Shown piece after piece: positions 2,591 through 60,053 of a stretch of 64,000 nt of DNA. How positions within the stretch are numbered: position 1 is the first letter of the stretch; every line of letters begins with the position of its first letter. The notes beneath the pieces are model-generated. The model was not told the DNA's origin. It was given only the letters and a program-made list of their open reading frames with translations, and ran no database searches. A program made the translations under genes and the position numbers. The DNA comes from Oculina patagonica (taxonomy: Eukaryota). Location: assembly GCF_052425735.1 (NCBI RefSeq), contig NC_135767.1, positions 14,880,001-14,944,000 of the forward strand, written 5' to 3'.

Positions 2591-2732
2591 AATTTTCGTG
2601 GTTCATTTAGCGACTGTGACTTTGGTCTACTTAAACTCATCTCTGAACCCGATTCTTTACTGTTGGAAGATAAAAGAGGTGAGACAAACGGTTAAGGACA
2701 CGATCAGACAGTTTTGCTGTTTGTGTAATTAA
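2591..2732 (+). pseudogene. GPCR 3' fragment (TM7-helix 8 only)
   Basis: Translates to ...[41 protein letters not shown]; no upstream TM1-6 sequence visible. Confidence 0.85.
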
Positions 2733-3736
2733 TCCTGTGTGACCAAATGACAATTCAACGAATGGAGTATAGTTTAAGCGATATTCTTGGCGTGCCAAAA
2801 GCCGCGAATGATTATTTTTTGTGATATGCATTATGGTTCGAAACACTGGTATCAAGAAACAAACCTTAGGGAAGGAGAATTTTTCTATTGTCTTACTAAA
2901 GCAAATAATTTTATTACAAGGCCATTTCAGCACGCTTAGTCGGCTTCCACTTTAAAATGGGCAAATGGCCTTACAGAAAGTAACTGCTTTGTTTGCTGTT
3001 GAATAAAACTTCTTTTACAGATCCGGAATGCGTTGTTCTGTAATTACATTAGCTGAAGGGTATCTTTAGCCAAATTAGTCTAAATGGCAATAAGTGGGAT
3101 AGCAATAACAAGTAACTGCCATCTTCTCTAAATAAGTTGTATTTGAATATTGTATATAATTAAAAAAGAGAAAATAAAGCATTTTTAACGAACCCGCAAG
3201 CACTGTAGTGCAATTCCGAATCAGTTAGCGCCGTATTATTACAGGGGTTTGCAAAGTTTCACCTGGCCTTTATTTCAATATGCGATGATTTCAAAGATAG
3301 CATGATGAGTGGTCATTTAAATATGACGTAAGCTAGCCAGGGCATGGTAATTATTAGGTCCTGCTTTCATTTCTTAAGCTATACGAGTTATGTTAGCCCT
3401 TCAATTCGGCAGCAAAGAATAATTAATCTCAAAGAGTTAAAATACATAAGGGCAGTCACACCACGACAGCACTGCAAGACAGCAAACGATTTAACAAACA
3501 CATTTGACGTCTTAAGCTACAACATTAACTAAATGCAAGGCTTGAACTCATGCCTGTAGATAATGAAATACAAACAGCACTCGGGGATAACTAAATATGA
3601 AATGTTACCGGATATTGTTCTGTCAATCATCCATCGGACAGAAACTAAAACTACAGTTGCAAATACTGTAGTCTTCTCATCTACAAAACTACTTTGTGCA
3701 GCAAACAAACTGAAGAAGCTTTACTACCAAGAGCAA

Positions 3737-3957
3737 ATGGCGAACTTTAGTTTGAGAATCGGAAACTGTACAAGTGTGTTGAACCAAACAAAGCACAGAA
3801 TCGTGGACAGCAGGCGAACCTTTATTATTTTCTGCTTCGAACATTTCTCTATCCATCACCGCATCACTAGGCAATACTCTGATCCTCATTGCTTTTCATA
3901 AAGATTCTTTTCTTCAACCGCCAACAAAACTTTTGCTGCGATACATGGCGTTCACTG
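3737..3957 (+). pseudogene. GPCR 5' fragment (N-terminus to TM2), frameshifted and truncated
   Basis: atggcgaactttagtttg...aaccaaacaaagcacagaatcgtgg...ccaacaaaacttttg...ggcgttcactg matches paralog 5' ends; preceded by the family upstream cassette (~3230-3736). Confidence 0.85.
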
Positions 3958-4483
3958 TTTGCTTTTGATAATGGGTTCTCTATAATGATGTCCAACGGTG
4001 TATCAGAAAGCAAATATCATTTTTGCTAATGCAATCAAATGTATCCTACATGTCTGTACTGCATTGTTCTTTAATTACACAGTACAGAAGAGAATCAATT
4101 TAGTCAAATTGGGCTAAATGAGAATTATGTGGGAAAGCATTCATAGAAAACGATGATTCCTTTAAAAATGTTCTGTTATAATTTACAAACAGAATTTACC
4201 TAACTAAGAAGCACTGATGAGCACTAAAAAGCGTCGTATTATTATAGGCCTGAGTTCAATTAATAACTAAAAATTTTCATTTCAAGATCTGAAACGATCG
4301 CGTCAGAGGCAGGTGGTTTGGGGAAGCTTCTCGTGCCTTTTTAACTAAAATTTGTTTTCTAGCTGACAGCTCGGTGTTTCATAAAGTGGCGGATCCTATA
4401 AAGACGTAAATAGTATCGCGGCACTTTTATAATCTCTTTGAAACTCAAGCGTACTTGTGCGTTATGTAACTGAAGTGAGTCGA

Positions 4484-5362
4484 ATGGCCAACTCAGCTAT
4501 AGACGAAAACTACACAAGCGAGCTGAACCAAACAAGCACATCAACATGGCTTACAGGCACAGCTGCTTTTCTTACAGCATTGAACATCTTTCTATCATTC
4601 ACCGCATCACTGGGCAATGCTCTTATCCTTGTCGCTCTTCATAAAGAGACTTCTATTCATCCTCCCACCAAACTTTTGTTCAGATGTTTGGCGGTCACTG
4701 ATCTTTGTGTTGGACTTATTACACAACCGATCTTTGCATTTTTAATTATTGCTTTATTCAGTGGTAAAATTATAAACGAAGAAGATCTTAACAATCTCTA
4801 CGAAGGAGCAAGAATTTCAAACGCTATGTTGGGTGGGATTTCAATCTTAATATCAACCGCAATAAGTGTGGACAGGCTTCTCGCCCTCTTGCTGGGTTTA
4901 AGATACAGACATATTGTAACTTTGAGACGAACTCGTGCAGTTACATTTTGCATCTTTGTAATTGGTGTTTCATGTGGAGCTGTGTATTTTTGGAGTGAAA
5001 GTATTTTCTGGATTACAGGCAATGTAATAGGAGTACTTTTTGTTTTAATCTCAATTATTTCCTACACGAAGATTTACTTAACATTACGACAACATCAAGC
5101 TCAAGTACAAGGCCATGTTCACCAAGGCCAACCGACCGGTGAAGGAATTCCACTTAATATAGAACGATACAAGAAGACAGTGTCCAGCATAGCATGGGTG
5201 CAGTTTGCGTTAGTTGTTTGTTATGCTCCATTTCTTGTTGTGTCTATACTTTTCAAAATATATTCGAATCAAATATCAGTTTTCATGGTTTATCTTGCTA
5301 CGGCAACTCTAGTCTACTTAAACTCATCTCTGAACCCGATTCTCTACTGTTGGAAGATCTAA
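4484..5362 (+). CDS. Intronless class A GPCR (subtype C), truncated by AAA->TAA right after NPILYCWKI; ancestral frame continues to TAG at 5410
   Basis: 7 hydrophobic segments, GN (TM1), LAVTD (TM2), SVDR (TM3), CYAP (TM6), NPILY (TM7). After the stop the frame reads EVRQAAKDTIRRLCC*. ATG at 4484 matches the paralog starts. Confidence 0.85.
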   Translation: MANSAIDENYTSELNQTSTSTWLTGTAAFLTALNIFLSFTASLGNALILVALHKETSIHPPTKLLFRCLAVTDLCVGLITQPIFAFLIIALFSGKIINEEDLNNLYEGARISNAMLGGISILISTAISVDRLLALLLGLRYRHIVTLRRTRAVTFCIFVIGVSCGAVYFWSESIFWITGNVIGVLFVLISIISYTKIYLTLRQHQAQVQGHVHQGQPTGEGIPLNIERYKKTVSSIAWVQFALVVCYAPFLVVSILFKIYSNQISVFMVYLATATLVYLNSSLNPILYCWKI

Positions 5363-6254
5363 GAAGTAAGACAGGCAGCGAAAGACACGATCAGACGGCT
5401 TTGCTGTTAGTGCAGTTTATTTGTTTGGCCAAACTACAATACGCTCTTTGGAAAGAAAATTAAAGCGATCGATATTTGTGATATTCAGAGGACCAAGAAT
5501 CATCATCATCATAATCATCATGATGTTAAAAAAACACACGATAGATCGCTTTGTAACGTTTAAATATGATCTCGATAAAAGAAGAATAGTGTTTCAAAAG
5601 AAATAAATGCCTGGCAAATTAACTTTATGGGATGTAAATCAAGAAAAGCATTTAGAGAAGGAGTATATTTTTATTTTCTTAAGCGAATATTTCAAGGCCA
5701 TTCAAGCTTAGCAGGCTGGTACTGAATAATGGGCTCTCTATGATGTTATCCAACTTAATGTATCAGAAATTAATTATTGTTTGCTTATGCAATAAAATGT
5801 ATCCTACAGATCCGGAATGCATTGTTATTTAATTACACAGTACAGAAGAGAATCAGTTTTGTCAAATTGGGTTAAATGAGAATTATGTGGGAAAACATTC
5901 ACAATAAATGATGATTTCTCTAATATGTTTAAAATTTTCTGTTATAATTTACACACAGGTTTCCTTTATCTAACTGGGAGCACTGGTGTTTAAAGCGCCG
6001 TATTATTACAGGCCTGAGCTCGAGTTCGATAACTTCAATTTTTCCTTTCAAGATCTGAAACGATCGCGTTAGGGGCAGGTGGTTTGGGAAAGCTTTATCG
6101 TGCCTTTTTAACTAAAAGTTGTTTTACCGCTAATAACTAATGTCGGTTTTTCATAAAGAGGCGGATCTGACAAAGTCGTAAATAGTATCGCGGTACTTTT
6201 AAAATCTCTTCGAAACCCAAGCGTATTTGTGCGTTATAACTGAAGTGGGTCAGA

Positions 6255-7328
6255 ATGGTGAACTCAACTGTAGACGAAAACTTCACAAGCGAGCTGAACC
6301 AAACAAGCACCTCAACATGGCTTAGCAGGCACAGCTGTTTTTCTTACAGCCTTGAACATCTTTCTATCCATCACCGCATCACTGGGCAATGCTTTGATTC
6401 TCGCGTTGCTCTTCGTAAAGAGACTTCTATTCATCCTCCAACCAAACTTTTGTTCAGATGTCTGGCGGTCACTGATCTTTGTGTTGGACTTAGTTCACAA
6501 CCGATCTTTGCATTTTTAATTATTGCTTCATTCAGTGGTAAAATTATAACCGAAGATGATCTTAACCAGAACGGAGAATGAACTCCGCTAAACATCACCA
6601 CGATACAAAAAGTCAGTTTTCAGCATAGCATGGGTATAGTTAGCACCAGTCGTCTGCTATGCTCCGTACATACCGTATTTTCTCGATTAAACGCCGGACC
6701 TCGATTAAACGCCGGCCTCGTATAAACGCCGGGTCAAAGTTGCTAGTTTTTAAAATAAACGCCGGGGGCGTTTGTTCGAGGTCCCGGCGTTTATTTGAGG
6801 TCAAGCTAACAAGTAAATCTGATTCTGTTTGTCACAAATCTTGATTGCAACATAAACTATTCAATCCGTAATAACAGTGTAATAATGTAACCTTGGGTAA
6901 TAATCACCTTTGGATACCCAGGGACAGTTTTTCGAGGAAGAACGAAGAGAAAAATCGTCCCGCCTTGACAAAATGCCCCTTGGTCTCAAAGATCGGTAAC
7001 AATAAATCAATCTGACAAATAGGCAGAAAATTGCAGTCCTTTAATAAACGCCGGGCCCCGATTAAACGCCGGCTTCAAATAAACGCCGGGTTTACCAAGC
7101 CAAGTTTGAAATAAACGCCGGGGGCGTTTAATTGAGAAAATACAGTAACTGTGTCTTTATTCAGATTAAATATCACATGTTGTATAGAAAATTAATTTTC
7201 GTGCTCTTTTTAGCTACGGTAACTTTTGTTTCCTTTAACTCATCTCTGAACCCGACTTTTTACTGTTGGAAGATCAAAGAAGTGAGACAAGCAGTGAAGG
7301 ATTCAGTAAGGCAGTTTTGCTTTTTGGG
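6255..7328 (+). pseudogene. Chimeric GPCR pseudogene (5' subtype C, 3' subtype A), TM3-TM5 deleted, MITE inserted in TM6
   Basis: 6255-6567 is near-identical to the 4484 gene but frameshifted; it then jumps to ICL3/TM6 (cgatacaaaaagtcagttttcagcatagcatgggta). After the MITE it resumes ...[38 protein letters not shown]. Confidence 0.85.
6673..7145. mobile_element. Tc1/mariner-pogo-type MITE with TA TSD inside GPCR pseudogene
   Basis: TA|CCGTATTTTCTCGATTAAACGCC...GGCGTTTAATTGAGAAAATACAG|TA; subterminal taaacgccgg repeats; GPCR homology is continuous across the site. Confidence 0.9.
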
Positions 7329-7748: not shown

Positions 7749-8696
7749 TCCACGTCTTCAGAAGATGTAATTTTACGTGTGTATATTAGATTACTTAGAA
7801 ATGACCACTGGTACTACAAGCTAAGTTATTGCATTGACCAATAAAATTTCCCGTTAAAAAAGGGCGAGGGCTTTAGATGCTTTCTTTAACAAACTTGTGT
7901 ATAATTTTTTAAGACTTTATTTTGCAATAAACTCATTATGTATACTACTGACACATTTGTCACTTTGCAAATAAGCAATATCTCATAATAGTCAGTCTGG
8001 AATCTTCTCCAAGTCATGGGTATACATATGAAAACCCTTCTCCACATAATGGTTCAGCAGATATCGTTATTCGGGTTGGGGCGCGGCAAATCAATAAATA
8101 TACAATGCGGTGTCTTTAAAAACCTATATTATATGCGTATATTTTCAAAACGAAACACGGAACACGCAGAAAACAACACACACTCAGCGGGGACAGTGGT
8201 TCAACATTATCCTCCCTTAAGCTGTTTTTTTTTTTTTCCGCGGTTTCTTTAGAATGCGTCAATGTTACATGGTACGCTATCCCCAACACTTTAGCAAGTT
8301 CAATAGCAGTCAGTCTCGAATGTTCTCCAACTCACTGATATACATATAAAAACCTTTCTACAGGAAATGAATCAGCAGATGCCATTATTCAGGTTTGGGC
8401 AAAGCAATGAATATACAATGAGGCGTTTTTGAAAACCTATATTATATGCATAAATTATAAACCGCAACATGGAAAAGAAACCGCAACAAGGAACACACGG
8501 GAAACAAAACACATTCAGAAGGGACAGATCGTTCAAACGTTTTTCGCGGTTTCTTTAGAATGTGTCTATAGTCCATGGCAGGTTACCCCCAATATTGTAG
8601 AAATTTCAATAAGTATGCACCTCTACACCCGTTTACACTTTTAGGTAGAGAGAGCAGTTTGGCATGAAACCAACGTAACTCTACAAACAATAAACA

Positions 8697-8841
8697 NNNN
8701 NNNNNNNNNNNNNNNNNNNNNNNNNNNNNNNNNNNNNNNNNNNNNNNNNNNNNNNNNNNNNNNNNNNNNNNNNNNNNNNNNNNNNNNNNNNNNNNNNNNN
8801 NNNNNNNNNNNNNNNNNNNNNNNNNNNNNNNNNNNNNNNNN
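8697..8841. other. Assembly gap (N run) inside an upstream cassette
   Basis: 145 consecutive N. Confidence 1.
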
Positions 8842-9259
8842 TTTGACAGATCAAAGATAGATGATCAATTATCGCAGGCTAGCGTTGGCGTAATTAGGTT
8901 CTTCTTTCATTACTTTGTGAGCTGCGTCAGGTCCTTTCATTAGTCAGCAAAGAATAGAATTAATCTAAAAGAGATAAGACAGATCTATGTAGCCATACGA
9001 CGACATCAAATATACACTGACGGCCTAACGCTACAACATGCTCTAAATGCATGGTTTAACGACGTGCGTTAAGTAAGTTAGGTTCAGACACAAGCGGCAT
9101 GTCAAAGACAATTTTACATGAAATATACTTGATATTTATCCGTAAATCATTGATTAGGCGGAAACTAAAACTGCAGTTATAAATATAATACTGTAGTCTT
9201 GTCATCTAGAAATTACTTTGTGTACGGAAGAAACTGAAGAAGTACTGACGACCAAGAAC

Positions 9260-10186
9260 ATGGCCAACTCTACTTCGGGATACGGAAACTACACAAGCGA
9301 GATAAACCAAACAAGCAAAGAATCATGGCCAGAAGGCGTACTCGTATTTCTTTCAGCCTTGAACATTTTTCTATCCGTCACCGCAACACTGGGCAATACT
9401 CTCATCCTTGTAGCTCTCCATAAAGAGTCTTCTCTTCATCCACCAACAAAACTCCTTTTTCGATGCCTGGCAGTCACTGACCTTTGTGCTGGACTTATAT
9501 CACAGCCACTATTCGCTGTCGCTCTTATAGGGCGTATAATTAAGATGAACTACCTCGACGAAGTCGACGAAGGATACATTGTTACAGCCTTTACTTTGTG
9601 CGGAATATCCATTTTAACATTGACAGCAATAAGCGTGGATAGACTTCTCGTTCTCTTGCTGGGTTCGAGATACAGACATGTTGTAACATTGAGACGAACT
9701 CGTGCAGTTATAGTTTGTTCCTTTGCAATCTGTGCTCTATGTGGATCGATGCATTTTTGGAGTACTCGTATTGCCTGGGTCGCAATTATTGTATTTGCTG
9801 TACTTTGCCTTATAACTACAACCTTCACTTACACAAAGATTTACTTAACATTACGACAATATCAGCCTCAAGTACAAAACCATGTTTACCAAGGCCGACC
9901 GAACGTAGAAAGAACTTCACCGAACATTGCACGATACAAAAAGACAGTTTCTAGCGTAGCATGGGTACAGTTAGCTCTAGTCTCTTGCTATGCTCCGTAT
10001 ATTATTGTATCTTTGCTCAGATTTAATATGTCACATGGAAGATTACTGTTCGTGTTCTATCTAGCTACGGTAACTCTAGTCTTTTTCAACTCATCTCTGA
10101 ACCCGATTCTCTATTGTTGGAAGATCAAAGAAGTGAGACAAGCAGTGAAGGACACGATCAGACAACTTTGCTGTTCCTTTAGTTAA
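9260..10186 (+). CDS. Intronless class A GPCR, subtype A (308 aa), intact
   Basis: N-terminal sequons NST/NYT/NQT, GN, LAVTD, SVDR, CYAP, NSSLNPILY, C-terminal CC; ATG context aacATGGCC shared with paralogs. Confidence 0.93.
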   Translation: MANSTSGYGNYTSEINQTSKESWPEGVLVFLSALNIFLSVTATLGNTLILVALHKESSLHPPTKLLFRCLAVTDLCAGLISQPLFAVALIGRIIKMNYLDEVDEGYIVTAFTLCGISILTLTAISVDRLLVLLLGSRYRHVVTLRRTRAVIVCSFAICALCGSMHFWSTRIAWVAIIVFAVLCLITTTFTYTKIYLTLRQYQPQVQNHVYQGRPNVERTSPNIARYKKTVSSVAWVQLALVSCYAPYIIVSLLRFNMSHGRLLFVFYLATVTLVFFNSSLNPILYCWKIKEVRQAVKDTIRQLCCSFS

Positions 10187-10659: not shown

Positions 10660-12120
10660 ACACGTTTTCAGGAGATGTTATTTTAAATAATGTACAGGTT
10701 AGTTCATTCAAAATTACCACTGCTTTTTCAAACCACGTTATTGAAACCACCCTTGGTATTTGCCTTGAATGGGATCTTTTAATGCCTTCCTAACCAAACT
10801 TTTAAATGAAATGTTATAACTAGGTTTTGCAATATTATAAGACCATTCTACTGAAATTGTCACCTTGGAATATTTAGCCATATCTTAACAGAGTCTTTGA
10901 AACCCATTTTGCGTTTTCGACGAGACCACAAAAAAATAAAAAGAGACCATCCTTTAAGAAGACTTAATACGAAACACGCTGGGAAAACGAAACACGGAAA
11001 ACCGAAACAATAACACATTCAGAGGAGCTTAGTGGTTCAGTCGTTCCCCTTCCTAACGCCTTTTCGCCGCGTTTTCTTTAGAATGTGTTTATAGTCCATA
11101 GAAGGTTACCCCCAACATTTTATCAAGTTCAATAACAGTCAGTCTCGAATGTTCTCCAACTCACTGATATACAAATAAAAACTTTTCGTCAGATAATGAT
11201 TCAGCATGTGTCATTTTTCAGGTTGGGCAAAGCAATGAATATACAATGCGGAGTTATTGAAAACCTATATTGTATGCGTATATTAAAACCGCAACACGAA
11301 ACACACGGGAAACAAATCACATTCAGAAGGGACAGATGATTCAAACGTTTTTTCGCGGTTTCTTTAGAATGTGTTCGTAGTCCATGGCAGGTTAACCCCA
11401 ATATTTAAGCAATTCCAATAAAAATTCGCCGTTATACCCGTTATTACTTTTAGGTGGAGAGAGCAGTTTGGCATGAAACGAAAGTAACTCTATCAACGAA
11501 GTAAACAACTTTTCATTCGACTTAACTTAAGTCATTACATAAAAAGATTGGCGAGAAAGACACTCTCTTTTTATATTTTCTCTTTCTTTTTTTTTTTACA
11601 GTATTTTTTATTGAAGTACTTTTGTTGATGCGTTTTCCGCTGTTCTAAACGTAGCCGTTATTTCAATATGCAATGATTTGACAGACCAAGATAGATTATC
11701 AATTATCACAGGTTAGCGTTGGCGAAATTAGGTCCTACTTCATTTCATTCCTTTTTGAGCTAGGTCAGTCCTTTCATTAGTGAGCAAATAATATAATTAA
11801 TCTGAAAGAGAATTAATTATTAAATCTAAACGGAAAAAACAAATAAGAAAGATCTATGTAGCAATACCACGACATTAAATACACATTTGACGGTCTAACA
11901 CTGCAACATCCTCTAAATGCATGGTTTAATGCCATGCGTTTAGATAGATTCAAACACAAGTAGCAGTCGAAGACAACTAAACATGAAATATACCGGATAT
12001 TTATCTGCCAATCATTGATTGGGCGGAAACTAAAACTGCAGTTATAAATACTGTAGTCTTGTCATCTAGAAATTACTTTGTGCACGGAACGAACTGAACA
12101 AGTACTGACGACCAAGAGCA
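10660..12120 (+). promoter_or_regulatory. Conserved upstream cassette of the GPCR family (representative copy); proximal CCAAT/ATTGG, GGGCGG, TATAAATA
   Basis: The same ordered blocks (cagtcagtctcgaatg; gataatg.tcagcagatg; acacggaa; tagtccatggcaggtta; aagtcattacata; ggcgtaattaggtcctac; gcggaaactaaaactgcagttataaata) precede the genes at 9260, 12121, 20021, 22849, 44423, 51412, 55397 and 59118. TATAAATA at 12043-12050, 78 bp before the ATG. Confidence 0.6.
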
Positions 12121-13048
12121 ATGGCCAACTTTACTTTGGGTGACGGAAACTACAAAAGGGAGATGAACCAAACGAGCACAGAATCATGGCCAGCAGGGGT
12201 TCTTGTATTTCTTTCAGCCTTGAACATTTTTCTATCCATCACTGCAACACTGGGCAATACTCTGATCCTTGTAGCCCTCCATAAAGAGTCTTCTCTTCAT
12301 CTACCAACAAAACTTCTATTTCGATGCCTGGCAGTCACTGACCTTTGTGCTGGCCTTCTATCACAGCCACTATTCGCTGTCGCTCTTATAGGGCGTATAA
12401 TTGAGATGAACGACCTCGACGAAATCGACGAAGGATACATTGTTACAACATTTACTTTGTGTGGAATATCCATCTTAACATTGACAGCAATAAGCGTGGA
12501 TAGACTTCTCGCCCTTTTGCTGGGTTTGAGATACAGACATGTTGTAACTTTGAGACGAACTCGTGCAGTTATAGTTTGTTTCTTTACAATCTGTGTTCTG
12601 TGTGGATCGATGCACTTTTTGGAGTACTCGTGTTACCTGGGTTGCAGTCATTGCATTTGCTGCACTTTGTCTTGCAACTGCAACCTTCTCTTACACAAAG
12701 ATTTACTTAACATTACGACAACATCAATCTCAAGTACAAAGCCATGTTTCCCAAGACCGACCGAAAGTAGAAAGAACGCCACCGAACATTGAACGATACA
12801 AAAAGACTGTTTCTAGCGTAGCATGGGTTCAGTTAGCACTAGTCGCTTGCTATGCTCCGTACATTATTGTGTCTTTGCTGAGATTAAATATCTTGCGTGG
12901 AAATATAATTTTCGTGATCTATCTAGCTACGGTTACTCTTGTTTACTTTAACTCGTCTTTGAACCCGATTCTTTACTGTTGGAAGATCAAAGAAGTGAGA
13001 CAAGCAGTGAAGAACACGATCAGGCAGTTTTGCTGTTTTTGTACCTAA
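12121..13048 (+). pseudogene. GPCR subtype A with +1 frameshift at ~12615-12620
   Basis: atgcactttttgg vs atgcatttttgg in paralogs; ORFs 12121-12792 and 12593-13048 join into one complete 7TM. Confidence 0.9.
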
Positions 13049-19160: not shown

Positions 19161-19193
<33 letters not shown>

Positions 19194-35118: not shown

Positions 35119-35122
35119 TTAA

Positions 35123-35273
35123 TATGTTCCAAGGGAAAATAATTTTCGTGTTGTATTTTGCTTCGGTAACTCTAGTCTACTTCAACTCATCTCTGAACCC
35201 TCTTCTTTATTGTTGGAAGATAAAGAAGCACTGAAGGACACAATCAGACAACTTTGTTGTTCCTGCAGCTTAA
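35123..35273 (+). pseudogene. GPCR 3' fragment (TM7-C terminus, subtype A)
   Basis: atgttccaagggaaaataattttcgtgttgtattttgct...aactcatctctgaaccc...tgttggaagat; this and the downstream 35273-35750 match the 55397 gene and its 3' flank. Confidence 0.85.
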
Positions 35274-41252: not shown

Positions 41253-41340
41253 TTTTCGTGGTTTGGGTAGCTACCATAACGCTGGTCATCTAATTCTTTA
41301 CTATTGGAAGATCAAAGAAGTGAGACAGGCAGTGAAGGAG
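41253..41340 (+). pseudogene. Small GPCR TM7/helix 8 fragment
   Basis: ttcgtggtttgggtagctaccataac...attctttactattggaagatcaaagaagtgagacaggcagtgaagga. Confidence 0.75.
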
Positions 41341-48483: not shown

Positions 48484-50350
48484 TTCACTGTTAGAAATTA
48501 AAAGCTTTACCGACGTGGGGCAGAACTAAAAGGAGACGTTTTTTAACCATTTTATCGTACGGAGCCGAGATACTAACTGTCGTTTCACTGAGCTTTTGTT
48601 GCTACTAAGTATATTCTTTAACCACTTGGATTAAAAAAATCAAATTATGATCACCGATCTTATTATCTCTGTATATTATTATCTCGCCATACTTTTTTGT
48701 GCCTCGTTTTCAGTTGTTGAAAATATTGAGCGAGTTCCCTTTTCTTCTGTCAATAGCAATTTATCAAATAGAGGTAGAAACTTCCTTTGCCAATATAACT
48801 GGCATTTAAAGAGTTAAGTTCCTTTTCAAAATTGCATGTATTAAAGCTGGGGACACCGAAACATGCTTAACTTGAACGACTAGCACTTAATTAGCGCCAA
48901 ACACTATATCCTCCGCAAACCAACATATTTCCGGGCCTATAGGCCTATTTAATAACTGAGTCAATATCATCAAGCAGTGGGCTAAAAGCATCGATAAAAA
49001 TATCTGTTCTTGTCTTTTCGCACTTGTCAGTGTTTTCGTGCTAAACATCACTTCTCTTTTTGCAACTAATGACAAAGTACTACAATGTTTATACTAATTT
49101 AACATCGACACATTTTTTTTGTCAAGTTCATTTCGGTTAAGATAGGTCATTTATTTTTATTCATCAGGCTCTTTTCCATCATTAAACCATTTACTCGTGA
49201 ATTTATAACGTATGAAGCTTTCAATTTATTACGTCAAAAGATGATCAAAGTTTCCGTTTTTAATTTCTCACAATAAAAAGCCGTAAGCTTTCATGACTGA
49301 CAGATAATTGTTTAAACGAGATGGAGTAACACAGCTGTATTGTATACTGCTTAATATTCAAGCCAAATGCCAAACTGTTTCTCTTTGAAAAAGAAACAGG
49401 TCTATTTAAGAAGGCTCACAACGGTTTCCAACACCTTTTAGCTCTTAAACGTCAGTACTACGAATCTTAAACAGTTGCTGCTACAATAATGATATCAAAC
49501 CAATGTTCAATCATCGCTGAACAAGTTGGGGTCATTTTCATAACGTCACTGGTAACCATAGCATTTTCCCTTTAAGCGCTTATAACTCAAAAACAATCCC
49601 GGTGACCCGCATTTTGTATCATTGAATAACGATCAGCATGTTAAGATACAACTTTTTGCAAAGTTAAAAAAAAATTCTCTGAAGCCGTTTAAGAGCCACG
49701 CAAAATTTTTGAAAATTGTAAAGTTTTGATGAATTGAAGTAAAGGACCAATCTAAACTGAAATAAATTTGATAATGAATGTTTCGATGTTTAATTTAGGT
49801 AAAAGATGTAGTAATTTGTCCTTAGTTGCAAAAAAAGAAAAGTGATGCATGAAAACACTGCAGACTTGTGCGAAAAGACAAGAACAGCTGTTTGTATCGA
49901 GGCTTTTAGCCCACTACTTGATGATATTGAACCAGTCAATATATTGGCCCAAAGGATTCCGGGATTATGTTAGTTTACAGATGATATAGTGTTTGGCGCT
50001 AAGTGCTGGTCAGTGTCAGTTTTAATGTATGCAAGTTTGAAAGGGTAATTCCTCTTTAAATGCATACTATTGGCAAAGGCAGTTTCCACCTCCATTTAGT
50101 AAATCACTATTGAGAGAAGAAAAGAGGATTCACAACATATTTTAAAATTGAAAACAAGGCACTACATAGGATTTATATGGCGAAAAAAGTTTAAATTGAT
50201 TAATCCAAGTTGTTAAAAAACATTAATTAATTGCAACAAAGGCGCAATGGCACGACAGTTTCCCTTGCTCCGTACGATTAAATGGGTATAAAACGTATTC
50301 TTAGACCTTCCCTACTTCATTAAAGCTTCCAATTTCTACCATTGAGCAAA
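48484..50350. repeat. Diverged long inverted pair of an old repeat family
   Basis: 48484-~49150 is the diverged reverse complement of ~49750-50350. Further copies at 24296-24690+33210-33600 (forward) and 41820-42475, 52670-53425, 57070-57475 (reverse). Confidence 0.7.
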
Positions 50351-51411
50351 GTATGAATGTATCCATGAATTGGGAAGAAAACATTCGGCAAAGAGGATCA
50401 GACTACAACAGGCAGCGATGCGGCTTGTCATTATGTTTTGGATGTGCGCGTCTCGCAGATGTAATTTTACTTGTGTATGTTAGATTAGACACAAAGAAAA
50501 ACCGGGGGCCTTAATGCCTTCTTTACCAAAGTGTTAAATGATCGTTAATGGCTAAGTTTCTGTCAGTCTCGAATGTTTCAAACTATTAAATATACATATG
50601 AAAACCTTTTTTCAGATAATGGATCAGCAGATGTCGTTACTTGGGTATTGGAAATTTCGTCCAAGGAAAATAAAATGAGGAATATTTGAAAACCTATATT
50701 ATATATTTATATTATATAAACTGAACACGGAACAAGCTTAGAACGGAAAAACCTCTCAGTAGAGACAGATGGTTCAAACGTTATCCTTTCTTAAGTTTTT
50801 TTTTCCTTAATCTTTTCTTTTTCGCGTTTCTTTTTTAAGAATGTGTCTATAGTCCTCGTTAGCTATAGGTTAAGCCCAACCTTCTATCAAGTTACATAAC
50901 TATTCGGCCGTTATACTCCTTGATACTCTTAGGTTGAGAGATCCGTTTTGCATGAAACCAAAGTGACTCTATTAGCGTCATAAAAAAATATCCAGCTTTG
51001 CATTCGGCGTAATTAAAGTCATTACATAATTAGGTTGGTGAGAGAGCCACTTCCTTTTTTATCTCTTTTCTTTTTTGACACTGTATTTTTGGATTTATGA
51101 GTTTATTTGATGCGTTTTCCCTGTCTAAAACGCGACGTTATACAAAATGGGATAAATTTGGCAGACCAAAAGAAAAAGACCAACTTATCAATTACCGCAT
51201 GCAGGCTAGCGTTGGCGTAATCAGATCCTACTTCCATTTCTTTGTTAGTCATGTAGGTCCTTTTATTAGTGAGCAAGGAAAAAATTAAACTGGAAATGTA
51301 CAGGATATTTATATGTTAATTACCCATTGGGCGGAAACTAAAACTGCAGTTATAAATGCTGTGGTCTTTTGTGCACGGTACAAACTCAAGAAGTACTGAC
51401 GACCAAGAACA

Positions 51412-52323
51412 ATGGCCAACTGTAGTTTGGAACACGGAAGCAACACAAGCGAGCTTGACCAAACAAGAACATCAACATTGGTCACAGGCCCAGTTGTTTT
51501 CCTCTCAGTCTTGAACATCTTTCTATCCATCACCGCATCACTGGGTAATGCTCTTATCCTCGTTGCTCTTCATAAAGAGACTTCTCTTCATCCACCAACA
51601 AAACTTTTGTTTCGATGCCTGGCGGTCACTGATCTTTGCGCTGGCCTGATTTCACAGCCACTATTCGCTGTCGCTGTTATAACAGGTGAAATTAAGATCG
51701 AAGAAGGGTACATTGTTACAGGATTCATTTTGTGTGGAATATCGGTCTTTACATCAACCGCAATTAGCGTGGATAGACTTCTCGCCATCCTCCTGGGTTT
51801 GAGATACAGACATGCTGTAACTTTGAGACGAACCCGTGCAGTTATAGTTTTTTTCTTTGTAATCCTTGTTCCATGTGGATCGATGCAGTTTTGGCGTACT
51901 GCTATTACCTGGGTTACATTCACTGTACTTCTTGTACTGTGTCTTGTAACTTCAACATACTCATACACGAAGATTTACCTAACTCTGCGACAACATCAGT
52001 CTCAAGTGCAAAACCATCTTTCCCAAGGCCGACCGAACGTAAAAGGAACTCCACTGAACGTTGCACGATACAAAAAGACAGTTTCTAGCATAGCATGGGT
52101 ACAGTTAGCAATATTCGTTTGTTATGCTCCGTTCATGATTGTTTCTTTATTCAGATTTAATATCGTATTGAAAGGAAAGTTAGTTCACGTGTTCTATTTA
52201 GCTACGGTAACTCTAGCCTACTTCAACTCATCTCTGAACCCGATTCTTTATTGTTGGAAGATCAAAGAAGTGAGGCAAGCAGTGAAGGACACAATCAGAC
52301 AACTTCGCTGTTCCTTGAGTTAA
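51412..52323 (+). CDS. Intronless class A GPCR, subtype A, short ECL1 (303 aa), intact
   Basis: GN, LAVTD, SVDR, CYAP, NSSLNPILY. Confidence 0.93.
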   Translation: MANCSLEHGSNTSELDQTRTSTLVTGPVVFLSVLNIFLSITASLGNALILVALHKETSLHPPTKLLFRCLAVTDLCAGLISQPLFAVAVITGEIKIEEGYIVTGFILCGISVFTSTAISVDRLLAILLGLRYRHAVTLRRTRAVIVFFFVILVPCGSMQFWRTAITWVTFTVLLVLCLVTSTYSYTKIYLTLRQHQSQVQNHLSQGRPNVKGTPLNVARYKKTVSSIAWVQLAIFVCYAPFMIVSLFRFNIVLKGKLVHVFYLATVTLAYFNSSLNPILYCWKIKEVRQAVKDTIRQLRCSLS

Positions 52324-53541
52324 ATTATCCATACTAAGCGAAAAAACTAAACAGCCAGCTTCCATAACTTTTGTACAATGTTAAGCCCAGAAATTACGAA
52401 AACTTCAATGTTAACTTTGAGATTAAGTACAATGGTCAGGCATACATACATTTATACATTAAAAAAAATATATCGAACGTTATAAAGAAAAAAAAGAATA
52501 TTCTATAATAGACGTGTTTTATTTGGCATTTGAATTGAATATTAGTAGACAATCACTTAGCTGCTCTGCTTCACCTTGTTTAAACAATTATTACACACCG
52601 GGCAAGAAGGCTTCTGAATATTTTGTGAGAATTTTAAAATAGAAACTTTGTGAGCACCTTTTCACGTTATAAATTAAAAGCTTCATACGTTATAAATCCA
52701 TGAGTGATCGTGAAAAGCTTAATTATGGCACAGCGCCTGATAAATCAAAACAAAAGACCACTGTAAACTGAAGTAAATCTGACAGTGAATGTGTCGATGA
52801 TTTAAGTATACATTGTTGTACTTTGCATTTGTTGAAAAAAGAGAAGTGATGTTTAGCATGAAAACACTGACTTGTGCGAAAAGACATTAGCAGCTGTTTC
52901 TGACGATGCTTTTAGCCCACTGCTTGATGATATTGACTCAGTTATAAAATAGGCCTAAAGGATCCCAGGATTATGTCAGTTTACGGATGATACATTGTTT
53001 AGCCCTAAGTGTGCTAAAGTGTTCAGCGCTTAAGTGTTCAGCACGTTTCGGTGTTCCTAGTTAAAATGAATGCAAGTTCAAGTTTTTGGCCAACATATTG
53101 GCAAAGACAATTTCCACTTGCATTTGATAATTTATTATTGACTAAAAAAGGGTAACTCGCCAAAAAAAAATTGAAAAATTGAAAAACACGGCATAAAATA
53201 GGATTTATACGACAAAAAAAGTCTGTTTTACAGTGAGACAATTAGACCAGTAATCCAAATTGAAATTTATTAATCCAAGCGGTTATAGAATGTTAATTAG
53301 TAGCAAGAAAGGCATAGTGATACGACACTTAGTATCCCGGCTTTGTACGATAATATTGATAAAAAAAAATGTATTCTTAGTCCTGCTCCACTTCGGTGCA
53401 ACTTCCACTTTCTATCATTGAACAAAGTGGCACACATAGGGAAGAAAACAATGGAAAAAGAGGGTCATAATGCAACAGTCATTGGTGCAAACTGTCATTA
53501 TATCAGTATATGTTTTGGGTGTACTCGTCTAGAAGCTAAAG

Positions 53542-53773
53542 CACCGGGAGCAGAGGGGCCGAATTCGACCTTTTCAAATATTAAAATGTTCGATCTATTG
53601 AGCGAGACGCGAAGACGGTCATTAAGCCTGCGGCTACGCCAAGCGTAACAGGATTCCCGCTCGTTTAACCGTCGCGTAAACAAAAATATCAAGAAACGTT
53701 TGACAAGGGCCACGAAATAGATCAAACAAGTTAATATTTACAAAGATCAAATTTGGCTTCTCTGCTCCCTGTG
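53542..53773. mobile_element. Short inverted-repeat MITE
   Basis: caccgggagcagag...aaatattaaaatgttcgatctatt / aatagatcaaacaagttaatattt...ctctgctccctgtg. Confidence 0.7.
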
Positions 53774-55396
53774 GTATTACAAACTACGTTATTACAGCAA
53801 CCAATGAAATTTACCTCCCAAAAATGGGTCTTAATTTATATGCTTTCGTTACCAAACGTTTGTAAAAAAAATTATGACTATGTTTTGCAATAAACGTATT
53901 ATGTATGCCTGACGCATCTCTAATTTTAGTTTGAAGTATCACATAACAGTCAGTCTCGAATGTTTTCCAACCCTCTGATATATGTACTGGGAAACCTTTC
54001 TTCAGATAATGGATCAGCAGATGTCGTTATTTAAGTTATTTTCGTCCGATGAACATACAAGGCGGAGTTTTTGAAACGTTCATTTTTATAGTTTATATTT
54101 ATTGTTTATAGTATAGACCGGAACACGGAACGCGCGAAAAACGGAACACATTTAGAGAAGACTCTACTCTTAGGCGGAAAGAGCAGTTTGGCATGAAACC
54201 AAAGTGACTTTATCAACAACATAAACAGAAAGTAAACAACTTTGCATTCGGCATTATTTAAGTCAATACATATTTAGATTGGCGAGAGGCACTACCTTTT
54301 TTATATTTTCTCTTTCTTTTCTTTTTTGACAGTGTTTTTGGATTGATGTGTTTTTGTTGATGCTTTTTCTGCGGCTGGATTAAACGTAGCCGCTATTTCA
54401 ATATACAATAATTTGACAGAGCAAAGAAAGATAATCAATTATCACAGGCAACCGTTGGCGTAATTAGGTCCTACTTTCATTCATTACACACGCGAAAACC
54501 GGAAACCCTCTGAGAAGACACAGATGGTTTAAACGTTATCCTTTCTTTAGCTCTTTTTTTTTCTTTTTTTTTCTTTTTTTTTTCGTGGTTCATTTCTTAG
54601 AATGTGTCTATAGTCCATGGCAGGGTATCCTCGACAATTTAGCAAGTTCAATAACAGTTCGGCCGTTTTACTTGTTTATACTCTTAGAGGTGGAGAGAGA
54701 GCTGTTTGCATGAAGCCAAAGTGATTATATCAACGTCATAAAACAAAAAGTAAACAACTTTGCATTCGACATAATTAAAGTCATTACATAATAAGGTTGG
54801 CGAGAAAGCCACTTTTTTTTTCTACTTTTTGTTTCCTTTTTTTTCTTTTTTTGACAGTGTTTTAGTTGATGCATTTTCCGCTGTCTTAAACGAAAAGTTT
54901 CATCTGGCTGCTAATTCAATATGCGACGATTTGACAAACCAATGATACGTTTCCATAAACTTATCGATTAACGCAAGCTGGTGTTGTCGCAATTAGGTCC
55001 TACTTTAATTTTTTTTGTAAGTTACGTCAGTCATTCCATTTGTGAGCAAATAAGAATTTTTAATTAATATTTTTATCTTCCAGATTTTGACACAGATCTT
55101 TGCAGCAATACCACGAAATCGCTTCAAGATGGCAAATCCCTTTGCTGGACGAATACACATCTGACGGTCAAACGCTACAACGTCCTTTAAATGCATGGTT
55201 TTACGTCCTGCGTGTAGATATTTTCAAATACAAGCAGCAGTCGAAGACAACTAATCGTATGAAATGTACCGGATATTTATTTGTCAATCATTCACTGGGC
55301 GGAAATTAAAACTGCAGTTATAAATACCGTTCTCTTTTCATCTAGAAATTATTTTGTCAGGAGAGCAAAGTGAAGAAGCTCCTGCGACCAAGAACA

Positions 55397-56332
55397 ATGG
55401 CCAACATTAGTTTGGGAGAAGTAAACTACACAAGCCAGATGAACCAAACAAGCACAGAGCCATGGCTAATAGGTGTACTTGTATATATTGGCGTATACCT
55501 TTTTCTTTCGGTCTTGAACATTTTGTTGTCCATAACCGCAATACTGGGCAATGTTGTTATCCTTCTTGCCCTTCAAAAAGAGACTTCTCTTCATCCACCA
55601 ACAAAACTTTTATTTCGATGCCTGGCTGTGACTGACCTTTGCGCAGGCCTGATTTCACAGCCACTATTCGCTGTAGCCGTTGTGGAGCAAATAATTGATA
55701 TAAGTTACAAAGACGAAGGATACATTGTTACAGCCTTCACCTTATGTGGAATGTCGATCTTAACATCAACCGCAATAAGTGTGGACAGACTTCTCGCCCT
55801 CTTGCTGGGTTTGAGATACAGACACGTTGTAACTTTGAGACGAACCCGTGCAGTTATAGTTTCTTTCTTTGTAATCAGTGTTCCATGTGGATCGATGCAT
55901 TTTTGGAGTACTAGTATTACCTGGGTTTCAAACATTTTTATTCTTGTACTTTGTCTTGCAACTGCAACCTTTTCTTACACGAAAATTTACTTAACATTAC
56001 GACAACATCAATCTCAAGTACAAAACCATCTTCACCCGGGCCGACCGAACATAGTAGGACCTCCACCGAACATTGCACGATACAAAAGGACAGTATCTAG
56101 CATAGCATGGGTACAGTTAGCACTAGTCGCTTGCTATACCCCGTACGTTATTGTATCTTTTCTCAGGTTTGATATGTTCCAAGGTAAATTAATTTCCGTG
56201 TTGTATTTTGCTACGGTGACTCTAATCTACTTCAACTCATCTCTTAATCCCATTCTTTATTGTTGGAAGATCAAGGAAGTGAAACAAGCAGTGAAGGACA
56301 CAATCAGACAACTTTGCTGTTGCTGCAGTTAA
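55397..56332 (+). CDS. Intronless class A GPCR, subtype A (311 aa), intact
   Basis: GN, LAVTD, SVDR, CYTP, NSSLNPILY, CCCS tail; short in-frame duplication IGVLVY/IGVYLF before TM1. Confidence 0.93.
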   Translation: MANISLGEVNYTSQMNQTSTEPWLIGVLVYIGVYLFLSVLNILLSITAILGNVVILLALQKETSLHPPTKLLFRCLAVTDLCAGLISQPLFAVAVVEQIIDISYKDEGYIVTAFTLCGMSILTSTAISVDRLLALLLGLRYRHVVTLRRTRAVIVSFFVISVPCGSMHFWSTSITWVSNIFILVLCLATATFSYTKIYLTLRQHQSQVQNHLHPGRPNIVGPPPNIARYKRTVSSIAWVQLALVACYTPYVIVSFLRFDMFQGKLISVLYFATVTLIYFNSSLNPILYCWKIKEVKQAVKDTIRQLCCCCS

Positions 56333-59117
56333 ATTATCTATACTAAGCAGAGACATTAAACAGCCAGCTGCCATTAGTTATGTACAATATTCAGCCAAAA
56401 TGATGAAAACTAATAAAAGAACTTTCAGGTCTAATGTATACATTTTTTCCTCCGGTCACTGACTTTAGTAATGATAAGCAGAACCCGAATTATTACATAC
56501 AGTTTTGCTTGTAAACCGCTTTCAGTCAAGCTCGATTGTATAACATTCTCGGTCTCTCAAAAGTTCTCATTCATGACTAAACCTAGGATTGACTAAAAGA
56601 GCCTTGCCAAAAAAGAAACTCCCCTACTCTCCCAGAGGAGAGTTAGGATTAAGAAGAAATAACTATTCAAATGGTAATCAATGACACCAATAACATGTGG
56701 TGAAATGGTTAAAAAACGTATTCTTTGGGTTGTCCTTCTACCGGCGACACAACTTTCAGTCCGCAGCTTCGGATAAAGTGAATAAATAGACGAAAAAGAC
56801 GAAGAACGAGATGTGATCAGAATACAATAATCATCGATGCGTTTTGTCATTATGTTTTGGAAGAAGATTTAGCCAAGCTAAATCAAACTACCTTATTGAA
56901 ACCTCATGGAATTTTCCCTCGATGGGATATTTTAACGCCTTCCTTACCAAACTTGTGAAAAAATTGTTATAACTAAGTTTTGCATACTTTTTATGGCACC
57001 TTTGAAAATTTAGCTATATCTCAATCGTTCTACCCCCTAAAGCCTTTTCTTCTCTCGCTATTTCTTTAGGATACAGTGTTTGGCGCTCAGTGCCGGCATA
57101 TTAACTACGGTGCCGTCGGTGTTAAACAAGTATCGGTGTTTTTTCCAGCTTTAATGCATGCAAGTTTAAACAGGAACTCATTCGTAAATGCCAACTAATG
57201 GCAAAAGCAGTTTCTTCCTCCATTTGATATTTACCATTGGCATAATAAAAGGGAACTCGCTCAATATATTAAACACTTGAAAACGTAGCACAAAATAGCA
57301 TGGCAAATTAAAAAGGTCTGCTTTACACCGAGATAATTATATCAGTGATCTTAATTCGAATTTATTAGTCCACGTGGTTAGAGAAAATTAGTTAAAAAGC
57401 TAAAATGGTTAAAAAAATAAACAATTTATAGTCCTCTCCTACTTTGGTACATCTTTCAGTTTCTATCATTAAAAGAGGTGGCATAAATTGGGAGGAAAAC
57501 TTTGAAAAAAAAAAGGCAGAATAGAATAGTCATCGATGCGGCTTGTCCTTATATTTTAGATGTGCACGTCTCGCAGATGTAATTTTACATGTATAGGTTA
57601 GATTATTTACAAAGAAGAACTGGAGCCCTTAATGCCTTCTTTGCCAACTCTTGAAAGATTGTTTATGACTAAGTTTTGCAATACTGACACATCTGCCATT
57701 TTTAAAATTTAGCAATATCTCATAACAGTCAGTCACCAACTCTCTGATATACATAAGAAAACCTTTCTCTAGATAATAAATCAGCAAATGTCGTAACTTA
57801 TTTAATAGGTTCCGGCAATTTCGTCTAGTGGATATACAAGCGGAATTTTTTAAAAACCGATATTATATAATTATATTATAAAACGGAACATGAAACACGC
57901 AAACGCCGGAAAACCCAGTTCCGAGAAGAGACAGATGGTTGAAACGTTATCCTCCCATAAGCTTTTTTTTTTTTCCTTTCTCTTTTTTTTTTCGCAGTTT
58001 CTTTAACTAGTGTCTATAGTCCATGGACTTTTACACCCAACAGTTTTAGCAAGTTCAATAACAATTCGCCGTTATACACGTTTGTACTTTTAGATGGAGA
58101 GAGCCGTTTTGCACGAAGCCAGAATGACTCTATCAACAATATAAAACGAAAAGTGACCAGCTTAATACCATTCGGCATAATAAAAGTCATTACATAATAA
58201 GGTTGATCAGAAAGCCAGTCCTTTTTATTTTTTCTTTCTCTTTCTTTTTTAATAGTATTATTACCTGGCTTCACACTAGAAGCTAAGTTCGTTTCAAGAA
58301 AGCACTTAAGGTGCGCTTGAAAATCTCAAGTCGCACTTTACAAAATTTTGCATCACACTTGATAACAAATAAATTACATGAGGTACAAGCTGTCAATCAT
58401 CTTCAGAATCGTGACAATGCTGCACGTCGCTTTCATTTGGCTTCCATTTCCTATTGGTCAAGTGCGTTCTCAAGTGTGGTGTAAACCATACTTGGCGGCG
58501 CACTTGGAAGCTTTGAAAGCTACGAAAGTTTTCATGGTCACCAAGTAAAGTTCAACCCCATTTAATTCCCCATACTCAAAGTAGGTCCCTAGTGCCCTTA
58601 GCTTATACTTTCGAGCTTTATTGTGAGCCAATTTTATTTTTTTTGTTTCGTTCATGCGTTTTCCGTTGTTGCCATGATTTAACAGACTAAAGATAGATGG
58701 TCATCAACTTGTCAATTAACTGAGGCTAGCTTTGGCGTAATTAGGTCATACTTTCTTTCCTTTGTGAGTAACGTCAGTCTTTTCATTAGTAAGCCAAAAA
58801 AAAATAATATGAAAGAGTAAAAACAGATCTATGGAGCAATACCACAGCATCGCTGCAAGGCGGTAAATCCTTTGACAAATACACATTGACGGTCTAACGC
58901 TACAACATCCTATAAATGCATAGTTTAACGTCGGGCGTGTAGATAGGTCAAATACAAGCAGCAGTCAAAGTAACTAAAATAAAATGAACCGGATATTTAG
59001 ATGTCAATCATCCATTAGGCGGAAACTAAAACTACAGCAATAAATACTGTACTTCTCGAATCTAGCATTTACTTTATACACGAAGCAAAGTGAAAAAAGT
59101 ACTGACGACCAAGAGCA

Positions 59118-60053
59118 ATGGCCAACTTAAGTTTGGGAGACGGAAACTACACAAGCCAGATGAACCAAACAAGCACAGAATCATGGCCAACAGGCATACT
59201 TGTATTTCTTTCAGCCTTGAACATTTTTCTTTCCATTACCGCAATACTGGGCAATGGTCTAATCTTTGTTGCTCTTCGTATTCACAAAGGGTCTTCTCTT
59301 CATAGACCAACAAAACTTCTGTTCCGAAGTCTGGCATTCAATGACCTTTGCGCTGGCCTCTTTTCGCAGCCACTCTTTGCTGTCGCTGTTATGGCGCGTA
59401 TAGTTAAGATAAACTACCTCGACGAAGTCGACGATGGATGCATTGTTACAGCCTTCATTTTGTGTGGAATATCAGTCTTAACGTTAACCGCATTAAGCGT
59501 GGATAGACTTCTCTCCCTCTTGCTGGGAATGAGATACAGACACGTTGTAACTCTTGGACGAACTCGTGCAGTTATAGTTTGTTTCTTTATAATCAGTGTT
59601 TTATGTGGATTGATGCATCTTTGGAGTAGCAGTATTACCTGGGCTGCAGTCACTGTAATTCTTGCATTTTGTCTTGTAACTGCAACCTTCTCTTACACGA
59701 AGATTTTCTTTACATTACGACAACATCAATCTCAAGTACAAAACCATGTTTACCATGGCCGACAGAACGTAGAAAGAACTCCAGCGAACATTGCACGATA
59801 CAAAAAGACAGTTTTCAGTATAGCATGGATACAGTTAGCACTAGTCGCTTGCTATGCTCCGTACATTATTGTGTCTTCACTCAGATTAAATTTTATGTTA
59901 CATGGAAAATTTATTTTCGTTATCTATTTAGCTACGGTAACTCTAGTCTACTTTAATTCATCTCTGAACCCGATTCTGTATTATTGGAAGATCAAAGAAG
60001 TGAGACAAGCAGTGAAGGACACGATCAAACGAGTTTGCAGATCCCGTAGTTAA
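59118..60053 (+). CDS. Intronless class A GPCR, subtype A (311 aa), intact but with motif drift
   Basis: GN, LAFND, SVDR, CYAP, NSSLNPILYY. Confidence 0.9.
   Translation: MANLSLGDGNYTSQMNQTSTESWPTGILVFLSALNIFLSITAILGNGLIFVALRIHKGSSLHRPTKLLFRSLAFNDLCAGLFSQPLFAVAVMARIVKINYLDEVDDGCIVTAFILCGISVLTLTALSVDRLLSLLLGMRYRHVVTLGRTRAVIVCFFIISVLCGLMHLWSSSITWAAVTVILAFCLVTATFSYTKIFFTLRQHQSQVQNHVYHGRQNVERTPANIARYKKTVFSIAWIQLALVACYAPYIIVSSLRLNFMLHGKFIFVIYLATVTLVYFNSSLNPILYYWKIKEVRQAVKDTIKRVCRSRS

Follow-up and report, generated by a model that had tools for sequence, protein, structure and literature searches.

The DNA analysed here is a stretch of 64,000 nucleotides from the coral Oculina patagonica (NCBI RefSeq assembly GCF_052425735.1, contig NC_135767.1, positions 14,880,001 to 14,944,000 of the forward strand), referred to below as the window; position x of the window is position 14,880,000 + x of chromosome CM126644.1 (GCA_052425735.1). 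A stop-to-stop scan for open reading frames (ORFs), combined with tblastn searches in which intact copies served as queries, revealed that one family of genes for class A (rhodopsin-type) G protein-coupled receptors (GPCRs) recurs along the plus strand, with 10 full-length loci and 5-6 fragments between positions 2571 and 60053. Each unit of this array comprises a short upstream block and one coding exon of ~930 bp, which encodes a receptor of ~310 amino acids (aa). The Pfam profile 7tm_1 (PF00001) was matched with 70-94 bits by all seven open copies tested (the curated cut-off is 30.5) and the copies share 55-92% amino-acid identity, which excludes a chance resemblance. The description given by an earlier, sequence-only reading of this DNA (clustered, co-oriented class A GPCR genes with a single coding exon and many pseudogenes) is therefore correct, all loci of the window being placed on the plus strand.

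Intact and disabled members of the array

The loci, named after their start coordinate within the window (e.g. c09260), were classified by DNA alignment of the 10 full-length copies and frame-aware translation. Five of them are intact and annotated, one is open, one is interrupted by a nonsense codon and three contain a single frameshift. The intact genes are c09260 (9260-10186, 308 aa, 7tm_1 score of 83 bits), c51412 (51412-52323, 303 aa) and c55397 (55397-56332, 311 aa), which belong to subfamily A of the phylogeny described below, c22849 (22849-23790, 313 aa, 75 bits), which belongs to subfamily B, and c40119 (40119-41057, 312 aa), the sole representative of subfamily C. Their translations are identical to proteins of the public collection (P0002, P0003, P0001, P0011 and P0088, respectively), so the annotated products of these genes are single-ORF translations. 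The sixth reading frame, c59118 (59118-60053, 311 aa, subfamily A), is uninterrupted in this assembly; the protein collection has no entry for its product.

The remaining full-length loci are pseudogenes. The nonsense mutation of c04484 (4484-5425, 7tm_1 score of 78 bits) is an AAA>TAA change at 5360-5362, directly after the CWKI motif, and it removes helix 8 together with the Cys-Cys tail. One additional nucleotide is present near 12615 in c12121 (12121-13048), the sister of c09260 (synonymous divergence, dS, 0.22), and another in the subfamily B locus c20021 (20021-20960), near 20688 and next to short runs of G and T. Two additional nucleotides (~45097-45098) disrupt c44423 (44423-45354), a young duplicate of c22849 in which the DRL motif has become DRP. 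Downstream of the frameshift both frames remain open in c12121, c20021 and c44423, which indicates that these inactivations are young or, at worst, assembly errors.

All fragments, which were detected by tblastn, are also oriented along the plus strand. The first (2571-2729) is a C-terminal piece (~aa 256-308) nearest to subfamily A (75% identity, E 2e-21). It is followed by an N-terminal piece (3737-3956, aa 1-73), in which the frame changes near 3790; this piece is accompanied by its upstream cassette, which begins at ~3252 (blastn alignment of 3252-3957 with 22375-23068). The fragment at 6255-6672 (aa 1-133, E 6e-39) is an incomplete second copy of the 5' part of c04484, and the duplicated regions (3968-4792 and 5726-6566) are 85% identical (blastn). 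Possibly, it forms one broken locus with the C-terminal piece located at 7165-7320 (aa 253-304, 65% identity, E 5e-19). Two further C-terminal pieces were found at 35115-35269 (aa 257-308, with a frame change) and, as a weak match (49% identity, E 3e-5), at 41263-41367, 200 bp past c40119. Altogether, 9-10 of ~15 loci (~60%) are disabled, and the previous estimate of about half was a fair one. The figure of at least 12 genes or pseudogenes was less exact, since it is reached only when fragments are added to the 10 full-length loci.

Receptor structure and key residues

The assignment to class A GPCRs extends to the relatives of these proteins: 7tm_1 matches all 56 of them, while 7tm_4 (the odorant-receptor profile) produces partial, lower-scoring matches in 40. 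With the Oculina copies the latter profile reaches 21-34 bits over parts of the sequence, 7tm_1 scoring far higher in each case, and nematode chemoreceptor profiles yield partial matches only, which are likewise much weaker. An AlphaFold2 model of c09260, built with 56 homologues (predicted local distance difference test score 82, predicted TM-score 0.78), contains seven helices and helix 8, connected on the outer side by extracellular loops (ECLs) of ~4 (ECL1), ~1 (ECL2) and ~4 (ECL3) residues. Taken together, the model and the sequences predict a receptor of minimal build: a glycosylated N-terminus of ~25 aa precedes seven helices, which are joined on the outside by very short loops and followed by helix 8 and a Cys-Cys tail.

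Foldseek comparisons gave TM-scores of 0.7-0.8 to structures of A2A, beta1, MC4R/MC5R and TAARs. According to both Foldseek and a family profile, the nearest solved structures are those of alpha-group receptors of ~20% identity (A2A, beta1, D3, 5-HT1A, MC3-5R and TAARs), none of which is clearly preferred and among which there is no special tie to peptide receptors; the profile E values were 6e-23 for the D3 dopamine receptor, 4e-20 for MC5R and 7e-20 for adenosine A2A. No odorant receptors (ORs) were present among the 60 best solved relatives in the family profile search.

The near-invariant intracellular motifs noted previously are evident in the alignment. N1.50, D2.50, R3.50, P6.50 and NPxxY occur in all ten full-length copies, and further conserved positions include P2.59, C3.36, D-R-L, Y5.58 and C-Y-x-P. 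The deviations from the class A pattern are also shared: Y3.51 is replaced by Leu (Pro in c44423), W6.48 by Tyr, and P5.50 is missing. Inspection of the alignment of transmembrane helix 4 (TM4) showed that Trp4.50 is kept only in c40119. Position 3.25 is occupied by Asp (in 5 of the 10 copies), Gly, Glu or Tyr and never by Cys, so the disulfide bond between TM3 and ECL2 must be absent, and position 3.29 is never acidic. Position 3.32 is Ala, Thr, Ser, Gly or Asn; as Asp3.32 is lacking in every copy, the receptors are not aminergic, and membership of the TAAR/aminergic group was rejected. Small size, a missing disulfide, a minimal ECL2 and a missing Pro5.50 are traits resembling those of melanocortin receptors.

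Selection acting on different layers of the receptor

The codons were split into outer, middle and inner layers according to the helix boundaries of the structure model. The ratio of nonsynonymous to synonymous substitution rates (omega), estimated with the Goldman-Yang model (GY94) for the 10 copies, was 1.00 in the outer third, 0.40 in the middle and 0.32 in the inner third; the corresponding values for the five intact copies were 1.10, 0.36 and 0.30. Bootstrap ranges obtained with the Nei-Gojobori method (NG86) were 0.67-1.06 for the outer and 0.19-0.34 for the inner third, and dS (NG86) was ~0.5 in both of these layers and 0.65 in the middle one. Selection thus differs between the layers at similar dS, and the statement that the receptors are constant inside and variable outside holds true. 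For whole genes, omega was 0.35-0.6 in pairwise comparisons and 0.54 by maximum likelihood. The highest local value (1.56) was found at the segment formed by the top of TM4, ECL2 and the top of TM5, which consists of 21 codons only.

The cytoplasmic half, which holds N1.50, D2.50, DRL with intracellular loop (ICL) 2, Y5.58, CYxP, NPxxY and helix 8, is under purifying selection (omega ~0.3). Gene conversion was considered as a cause of the constant cytoplasmic motifs and rejected: dS within these blocks (0.45-0.8) is not below that found elsewhere. As synonymous divergence is not reduced there, the constancy of the motifs results from purifying selection on the protein. Evolution of the helix bundle's outer third proceeds at a rate close to neutral (omega ~1.0-1.1). 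Diversifying selection on this face is plausible, and the outer-third omega is indistinguishable from 1.

A separate observation concerns the 5' ends of the genes, the only part of the coding sequence that appears homogenised between subfamilies. The first 150 coding nucleotides of subfamilies A and B are ~90% identical (e.g. 9260-9410 and 22849-22999), compared with ~74% elsewhere, and dS dips there to 0.14-0.22. This may reflect a short conversion tract or a constraint at the nucleotide level near the start.

Subfamilies and extent of the cluster

In phylogenetic trees (a quick one of 125 rows and a careful one of 60 rows) the copies of the window fall into three old subfamilies, A, B and C. 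Subfamily A comprises c51412, c55397, c59118, c09260 and c12121, which form a clade restricted to the window (support 100/99), i.e. a five-copy burst with no interleaved orthologues from other corals. Subfamily B (c20021, c22849 and c44423, with c04484 near) is interleaved with genes of other corals, and c40119 (subfamily C) clusters with genes from other corals and with one distant paralogue from Oculina (support 100/98). A single clade of the ten copies was rejected by the approximately unbiased test (p 3e-58), the group having been named after the first tree was seen.

Pairwise dS among the copies ranges from 0.14 to 0.97. The lowest value is that of c22849 and c44423, which are parts of a duplicated 1.9-kb unit of 90% DNA identity. 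The history of the array is therefore one of birth-and-death evolution, as had been suggested: old lineages have been kept side by side, one recent local burst has taken place and loss has been repeated.

The cluster passes both ends of the window. When neighbouring paralogues of Oculina were looked up and the flanks then searched with tblastn, further copies were identified on either side, which extend it to ~84 kb with 14 full-length loci (~14.867-14.950 Mb of CM126644.1). The upstream flank (examined in record 14,860,996-14,881,919) contains three more full-length loci, one of them on the opposite strand: an intact-looking copy ~0.2-1.1 kb before the window start, P0004, which is the oppositely oriented gene, ~8 kb before it, and, further upstream, a 305-aa family gene beside a VWA/hemicentin-domain gene at the end of the cluster. 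Downstream, P0021 is located at the window-equivalent position 69147-70082.

Distribution of the family in corals

The family to which these genes belong is a large stony-coral expansion. In a large protein search 7950 of 8000 candidates matched, which places the array within a very large family, and an exhaustive search retrieved 421 clusters (50% identity) at E<1e-30. Named distant members (~40% identity) originate from Orbicella and Acropora, and the family thus spans both major coral clades, Robusta and Complexa. Its members carry automatic names such as melanocortin receptor 5-like, adenosine receptor A3-like and TAAR9-like, and their Atlas neighbours are cnidarian clusters named in the same way. 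The melanocortin names can probably be ascribed to shared build traits and best hits rather than to orthology.

Tandem arrangement is also found outside Oculina: a 3.5-Mb contig of another coral contains three co-oriented copies of subfamily B, ~4.3 kb apart, two of which are truncated, and one of the truncated copies adjoins a reverse-transcriptase ORF. The Orbicella relative P0007 is alone within 10 kb on each side, at a locus that includes 4.4 kb of N.

Comparison with a second assembly and probable decay of c59118

Contig JADOBR010007231.1 of assembly GCA_044670265.1 is colinear with positions 49529-63027 of the window at 99.0-99.5% identity, and it reproduces three neighbouring genes (c51412, c55397 and c59118) with the same spacing. 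Because of this colinearity, an assembly artefact can be ruled out for this part of the array. In the second assembly c51412 is identical and c55397 differs by one synonymous base. The comparison of c59118 revealed seven differences in 847 nucleotides, including TGG>TAG at codon 237 (W237*), and the gene shows 10 departures from family columns conserved at >=90% (the median of its homologues is 3). Judging from these sequences, c59118 is probably under relaxed constraint and decaying, with a null allele or a null orthologue; W237* may be a segregating null allele. The counterpart of the gene lies at 9454-10164 of the second-assembly stretch examined.

The sequence-only reading had itself named assembly artefacts among the findings that would refute it; such artefacts could be collapsed or duplicated haplotypes or mis-joined repeats. 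This explanation draws on the fact that the frameshifts come from one assembly and that an assembly gap (145 N, 8697-8841) is present inside the region, between a fragment and c09260. Relative to the ATG of c09260 the gap is at -563 to -419, within the upstream cassette of this gene; the left flank of the gap (8147-8696) aligns by blastn with 10984-11507 and its right flank (from 8842) with 11677 onward in the next unit, which has 169 bp opposite the 145 N. As the flanks are colinear with a paralogous unit, the gap is non-coding and crosses no reading frame. Moreover, the copies differ by 10-35% in DNA, far beyond alleles, the second assembly repeats three neighbouring genes, and comparable arrays exist in other corals. 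On the grounds of divergence between copies and colinearity of the assemblies the artefact explanation was rejected, and we assign it a negligible probability.

Upstream blocks, probable transposon and spacers

About 150 nucleotides upstream of each ATG are conserved between subfamilies (61-73% identity, 10 copies aligned; the alignment for c55397 begins at 54977). An example is the proximal block of c09260 (9110-9259, plus strand), a putative core promoter with TATAAA at -82. The sequence TATAAA or GATAAA occurs at -59 to -87 in 6 of the 10 copies, which suggests that each copy carries its own compact promoter, duplicated along with the gene. Another conserved block, GATATTTATCTGTCAATCA, is placed ~110-130 nucleotides upstream of the ATGs, ahead of the TATA-like box (e.g. 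at loci 20021 and 40119). The core GTCAATCA of the upstream block resembles a CCAAT box or a PBX-MEIS composite site; because it is kept in 4 of the 10 copies only, neither reading was adopted.

The largest spacing in the array is due to the insertion of an 8.5-kb element (24687-33209, minus strand) bounded by terminal inverted repeats of ~880 bp (24687-25563 and 33209-32330), which are 98% identical. Its two minus-strand ORFs (391 and 579 aa) have no Pfam match; their Atlas neighbours carry DUF7869/DDE transposase families, and the element has the appearance of a DNA transposon that entered the array at a recent date. In addition, intergenic segments at 33205-33960, 41894-42718, 48479-50592 and 52522-53501 recur in both orientations with 67-90% identity. 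These are probably decayed repeats or remains of transposons that fill the spacers.

Possible role of the array

Considering all of the above, it is likely that this 84-kb tandem cluster of orphan class A GPCR genes, part of a family expanded in stony corals, constitutes a putative ligand-diversified repertoire. Units of the array multiply locally, probably by unequal crossing-over between them, and diverge; many are subsequently lost, be it through a single indel, a nonsense codon, truncation or the insertion of a transposon. The intact copies would all signal through the same transducer and have different ligands, and it is this presumed combination of common coupling and different binding that leads us to regard the repertoire as ligand-diversified.

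Several observations weigh against such a repertoire. In the clusters formed at 90% identity around the five intact proteins every entry is genome-derived and none is an assembled transcript, which fits low expression and proves nothing. Words were sampled from two stretches, and one probable RNA run of the same organism contained fractions of 0.20 and 0.29 of them, respectively; these could come from transcript or from DNA carry-over. The three frameshifts of c12121, c20021 and c44423, one of them beside short homopolymer runs, are known from a single assembly, and an exact look-up of the truncated products, aimed at their confirmation in a second assembly, gave no match. Finally, an outer-third omega of ~1 is equally expected from relaxed constraint.

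The last of these points and the lack of assembled transcripts also count in favour of another explanation, in which the region is prone to duplication, the majority of its copies are by-products without a function and the outer variability reflects relaxed constraint. The range of outer-third omega includes 1, 9-10 of ~15 loci are disabled, and c59118 is decaying though open. However, the five intact genes keep an omega of 0.30 in the inner and 0.36 in the middle layer at dS of ~0.5-0.6, all activation residues are retained, and the two assemblies differ at no position of c51412 and at one (synonymous) position of c55397, as against seven in c59118. The subfamilies also persist across Robusta and Complexa corals. 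We therefore consider the by-product explanation very improbable.

As regards the ligands of a diversified repertoire, the genomic behaviour of the array is chemoreceptor-like, as has been confirmed here, and a chemosensory function may be supposed. The ligands might be chemical cues from the surroundings (related to food or settlement, or metabolites of microbes or symbionts), a suggestion to which we give slightly less than an even chance.

Endogenous ligands (neuropeptides, hormones or lipids) appear less probable than external cues and on the whole unlikely, and the same can be said of the idea that the receptors which bind them were expanded for internal signalling. A whole-gene omega of 0.54, with a value of ~1 in the outer third, is high for receptors of conserved endogenous ligands. 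In addition, ~60% of the loci are disabled, no orthologues of other corals fall among the five copies of the local burst, and the nearest solved relatives, alpha-group receptors of ~20% identity, show no special tie to peptide receptors. These arguments have to be set against the melanocortin-like build of the receptors (~310 aa, no Cys3.25 disulfide, almost no ECL2 and no Pro5.50) and against two published observations: cnidarian peptide-receptor families, most of them still orphan, have expanded independently (PMC11087051), and a coral cell atlas shows that many rhodopsin-type GPCRs are expressed in neurons (PMC8162421).

The ligand-diversified repertoire could also be viewed in a more specific way, with the family as the stony-coral counterpart of the cnidarian OR-like clade, i.e. 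a true chemosensory repertoire sparsely expressed in exposed sensory cells of larvae or polyps. This we regard as improbable. If it were true, individual copies might be tuned to settlement inducers (crustose algae, bacteria) or symbiont metabolites, and the array would offer a tractable molecular handle on coral settlement and partner choice. It should be borne in mind that corals rely on chemistry in selecting where to settle, what to eat and with which microbes to associate and that, to our knowledge, there is no cnidarian chemosensory GPCR with a known ligand. Arrays of this kind are obvious candidates for such receptors, and five intact related receptors, mapped variable positions and natural null copies make up a panel for expression mapping and ligand screening.

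Comparison with known systems

In style, the array resembles vertebrate ORs and TAARs, with which it shares single exons, co-oriented clusters, pseudogenes and lineage bursts, as well as a pocket that varies and a cytoplasmic face that stays constant. The defining features of both groups are nevertheless missing, and membership of either cannot be upheld. Odorant receptors have a disulfide bond between Cys3.25 and ECL2 and a long ECL2, whereas the Oculina receptors lack this bond and their ECL2 amounts to ~1 residue in the model; given also the weak, partial 7tm_4 matches and the absence of OR motifs described below, assignment to vertebrate ORs was rejected. TAARs differ in possessing the Asp3.32 that no Oculina copy retains.

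The similarity to melanocortin receptors is one of build: both are very small, with short termini, a minimal ECL2, no TM3-ECL2 disulfide, no Pro5.50 and an ICL1 motif of the LH.P type. Asp3.25 is present in 5 of the 10 copies, and alignments to MC5R and MC3R are full-length. On the other hand, identity is ~20% and the match is no better than that to dopamine, adrenergic or adenosine receptors; the Oculina proteins have DRL instead of DRY and Tyr in place of Trp6.48. The acidic ligand/Ca2+ site of melanocortin receptors is composed of E2.60, D3.25 and D3.29. Position 3.29 is never acidic in the array, and membership was rejected on the defining residues compared (3.25 and 3.29 of this site), the acidic site being incomplete.

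Among cnidarian systems, the OR-like genes of Nematostella vectensis, which are mostly single-exon and tandemly arrayed (Churcher & Taylor 2011, PMC3017388), are comparable as single-exon tandem class A GPCRs whose conservation is concentrated around the intracellular loops. Of our family, 72-75% have the ICL1-TM2 skeleton L..P...L...L...D........P. Motifs 1 and 2 of Churcher & Taylor in their strict form (with Tyr) were found in none of 220 family members, in which Lys or Arg invariably takes the place of this Tyr; the same residue of the motif is missing from most OR-like genes of Nematostella as well (PMC3017388). For Nematostella, ~1000 class A GPCRs, mostly orphan, have been documented (Thiel et al. 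2024, PMC11087051).

The closest published parallel at the level of gene families is the study of Noel et al. 2023 (Genome Biol, PMC10236652), in which no domain was more frequent than rhodopsin-like GPCR among the orthogroups amplified in corals (34 of 192). These were mostly tandem duplicates with genus- or species-specific copy numbers, for which roles in immunity or symbiosis were guessed. The Oculina array is a concrete example, from a further coral species, of such tandem amplification of stony-coral rhodopsin-like GPCRs with lineage-specific copy number; that study works at the orthogroup level, without this cluster, its pseudogenes, the layered selection or the structural peculiarities of the receptors. 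Arrays of this sort are known to be frequent in corals. With tandem coral rhodopsin-like GPCRs (PMC10236652) and Nematostella OR-like genes (PMC3017388) already published, and five of the genes annotated by NCBI, the system cannot be called undescribed, as had been suggested. To conclude, the array is a further example of a known phenomenon and not a discovery, and its value is that of a worked example.

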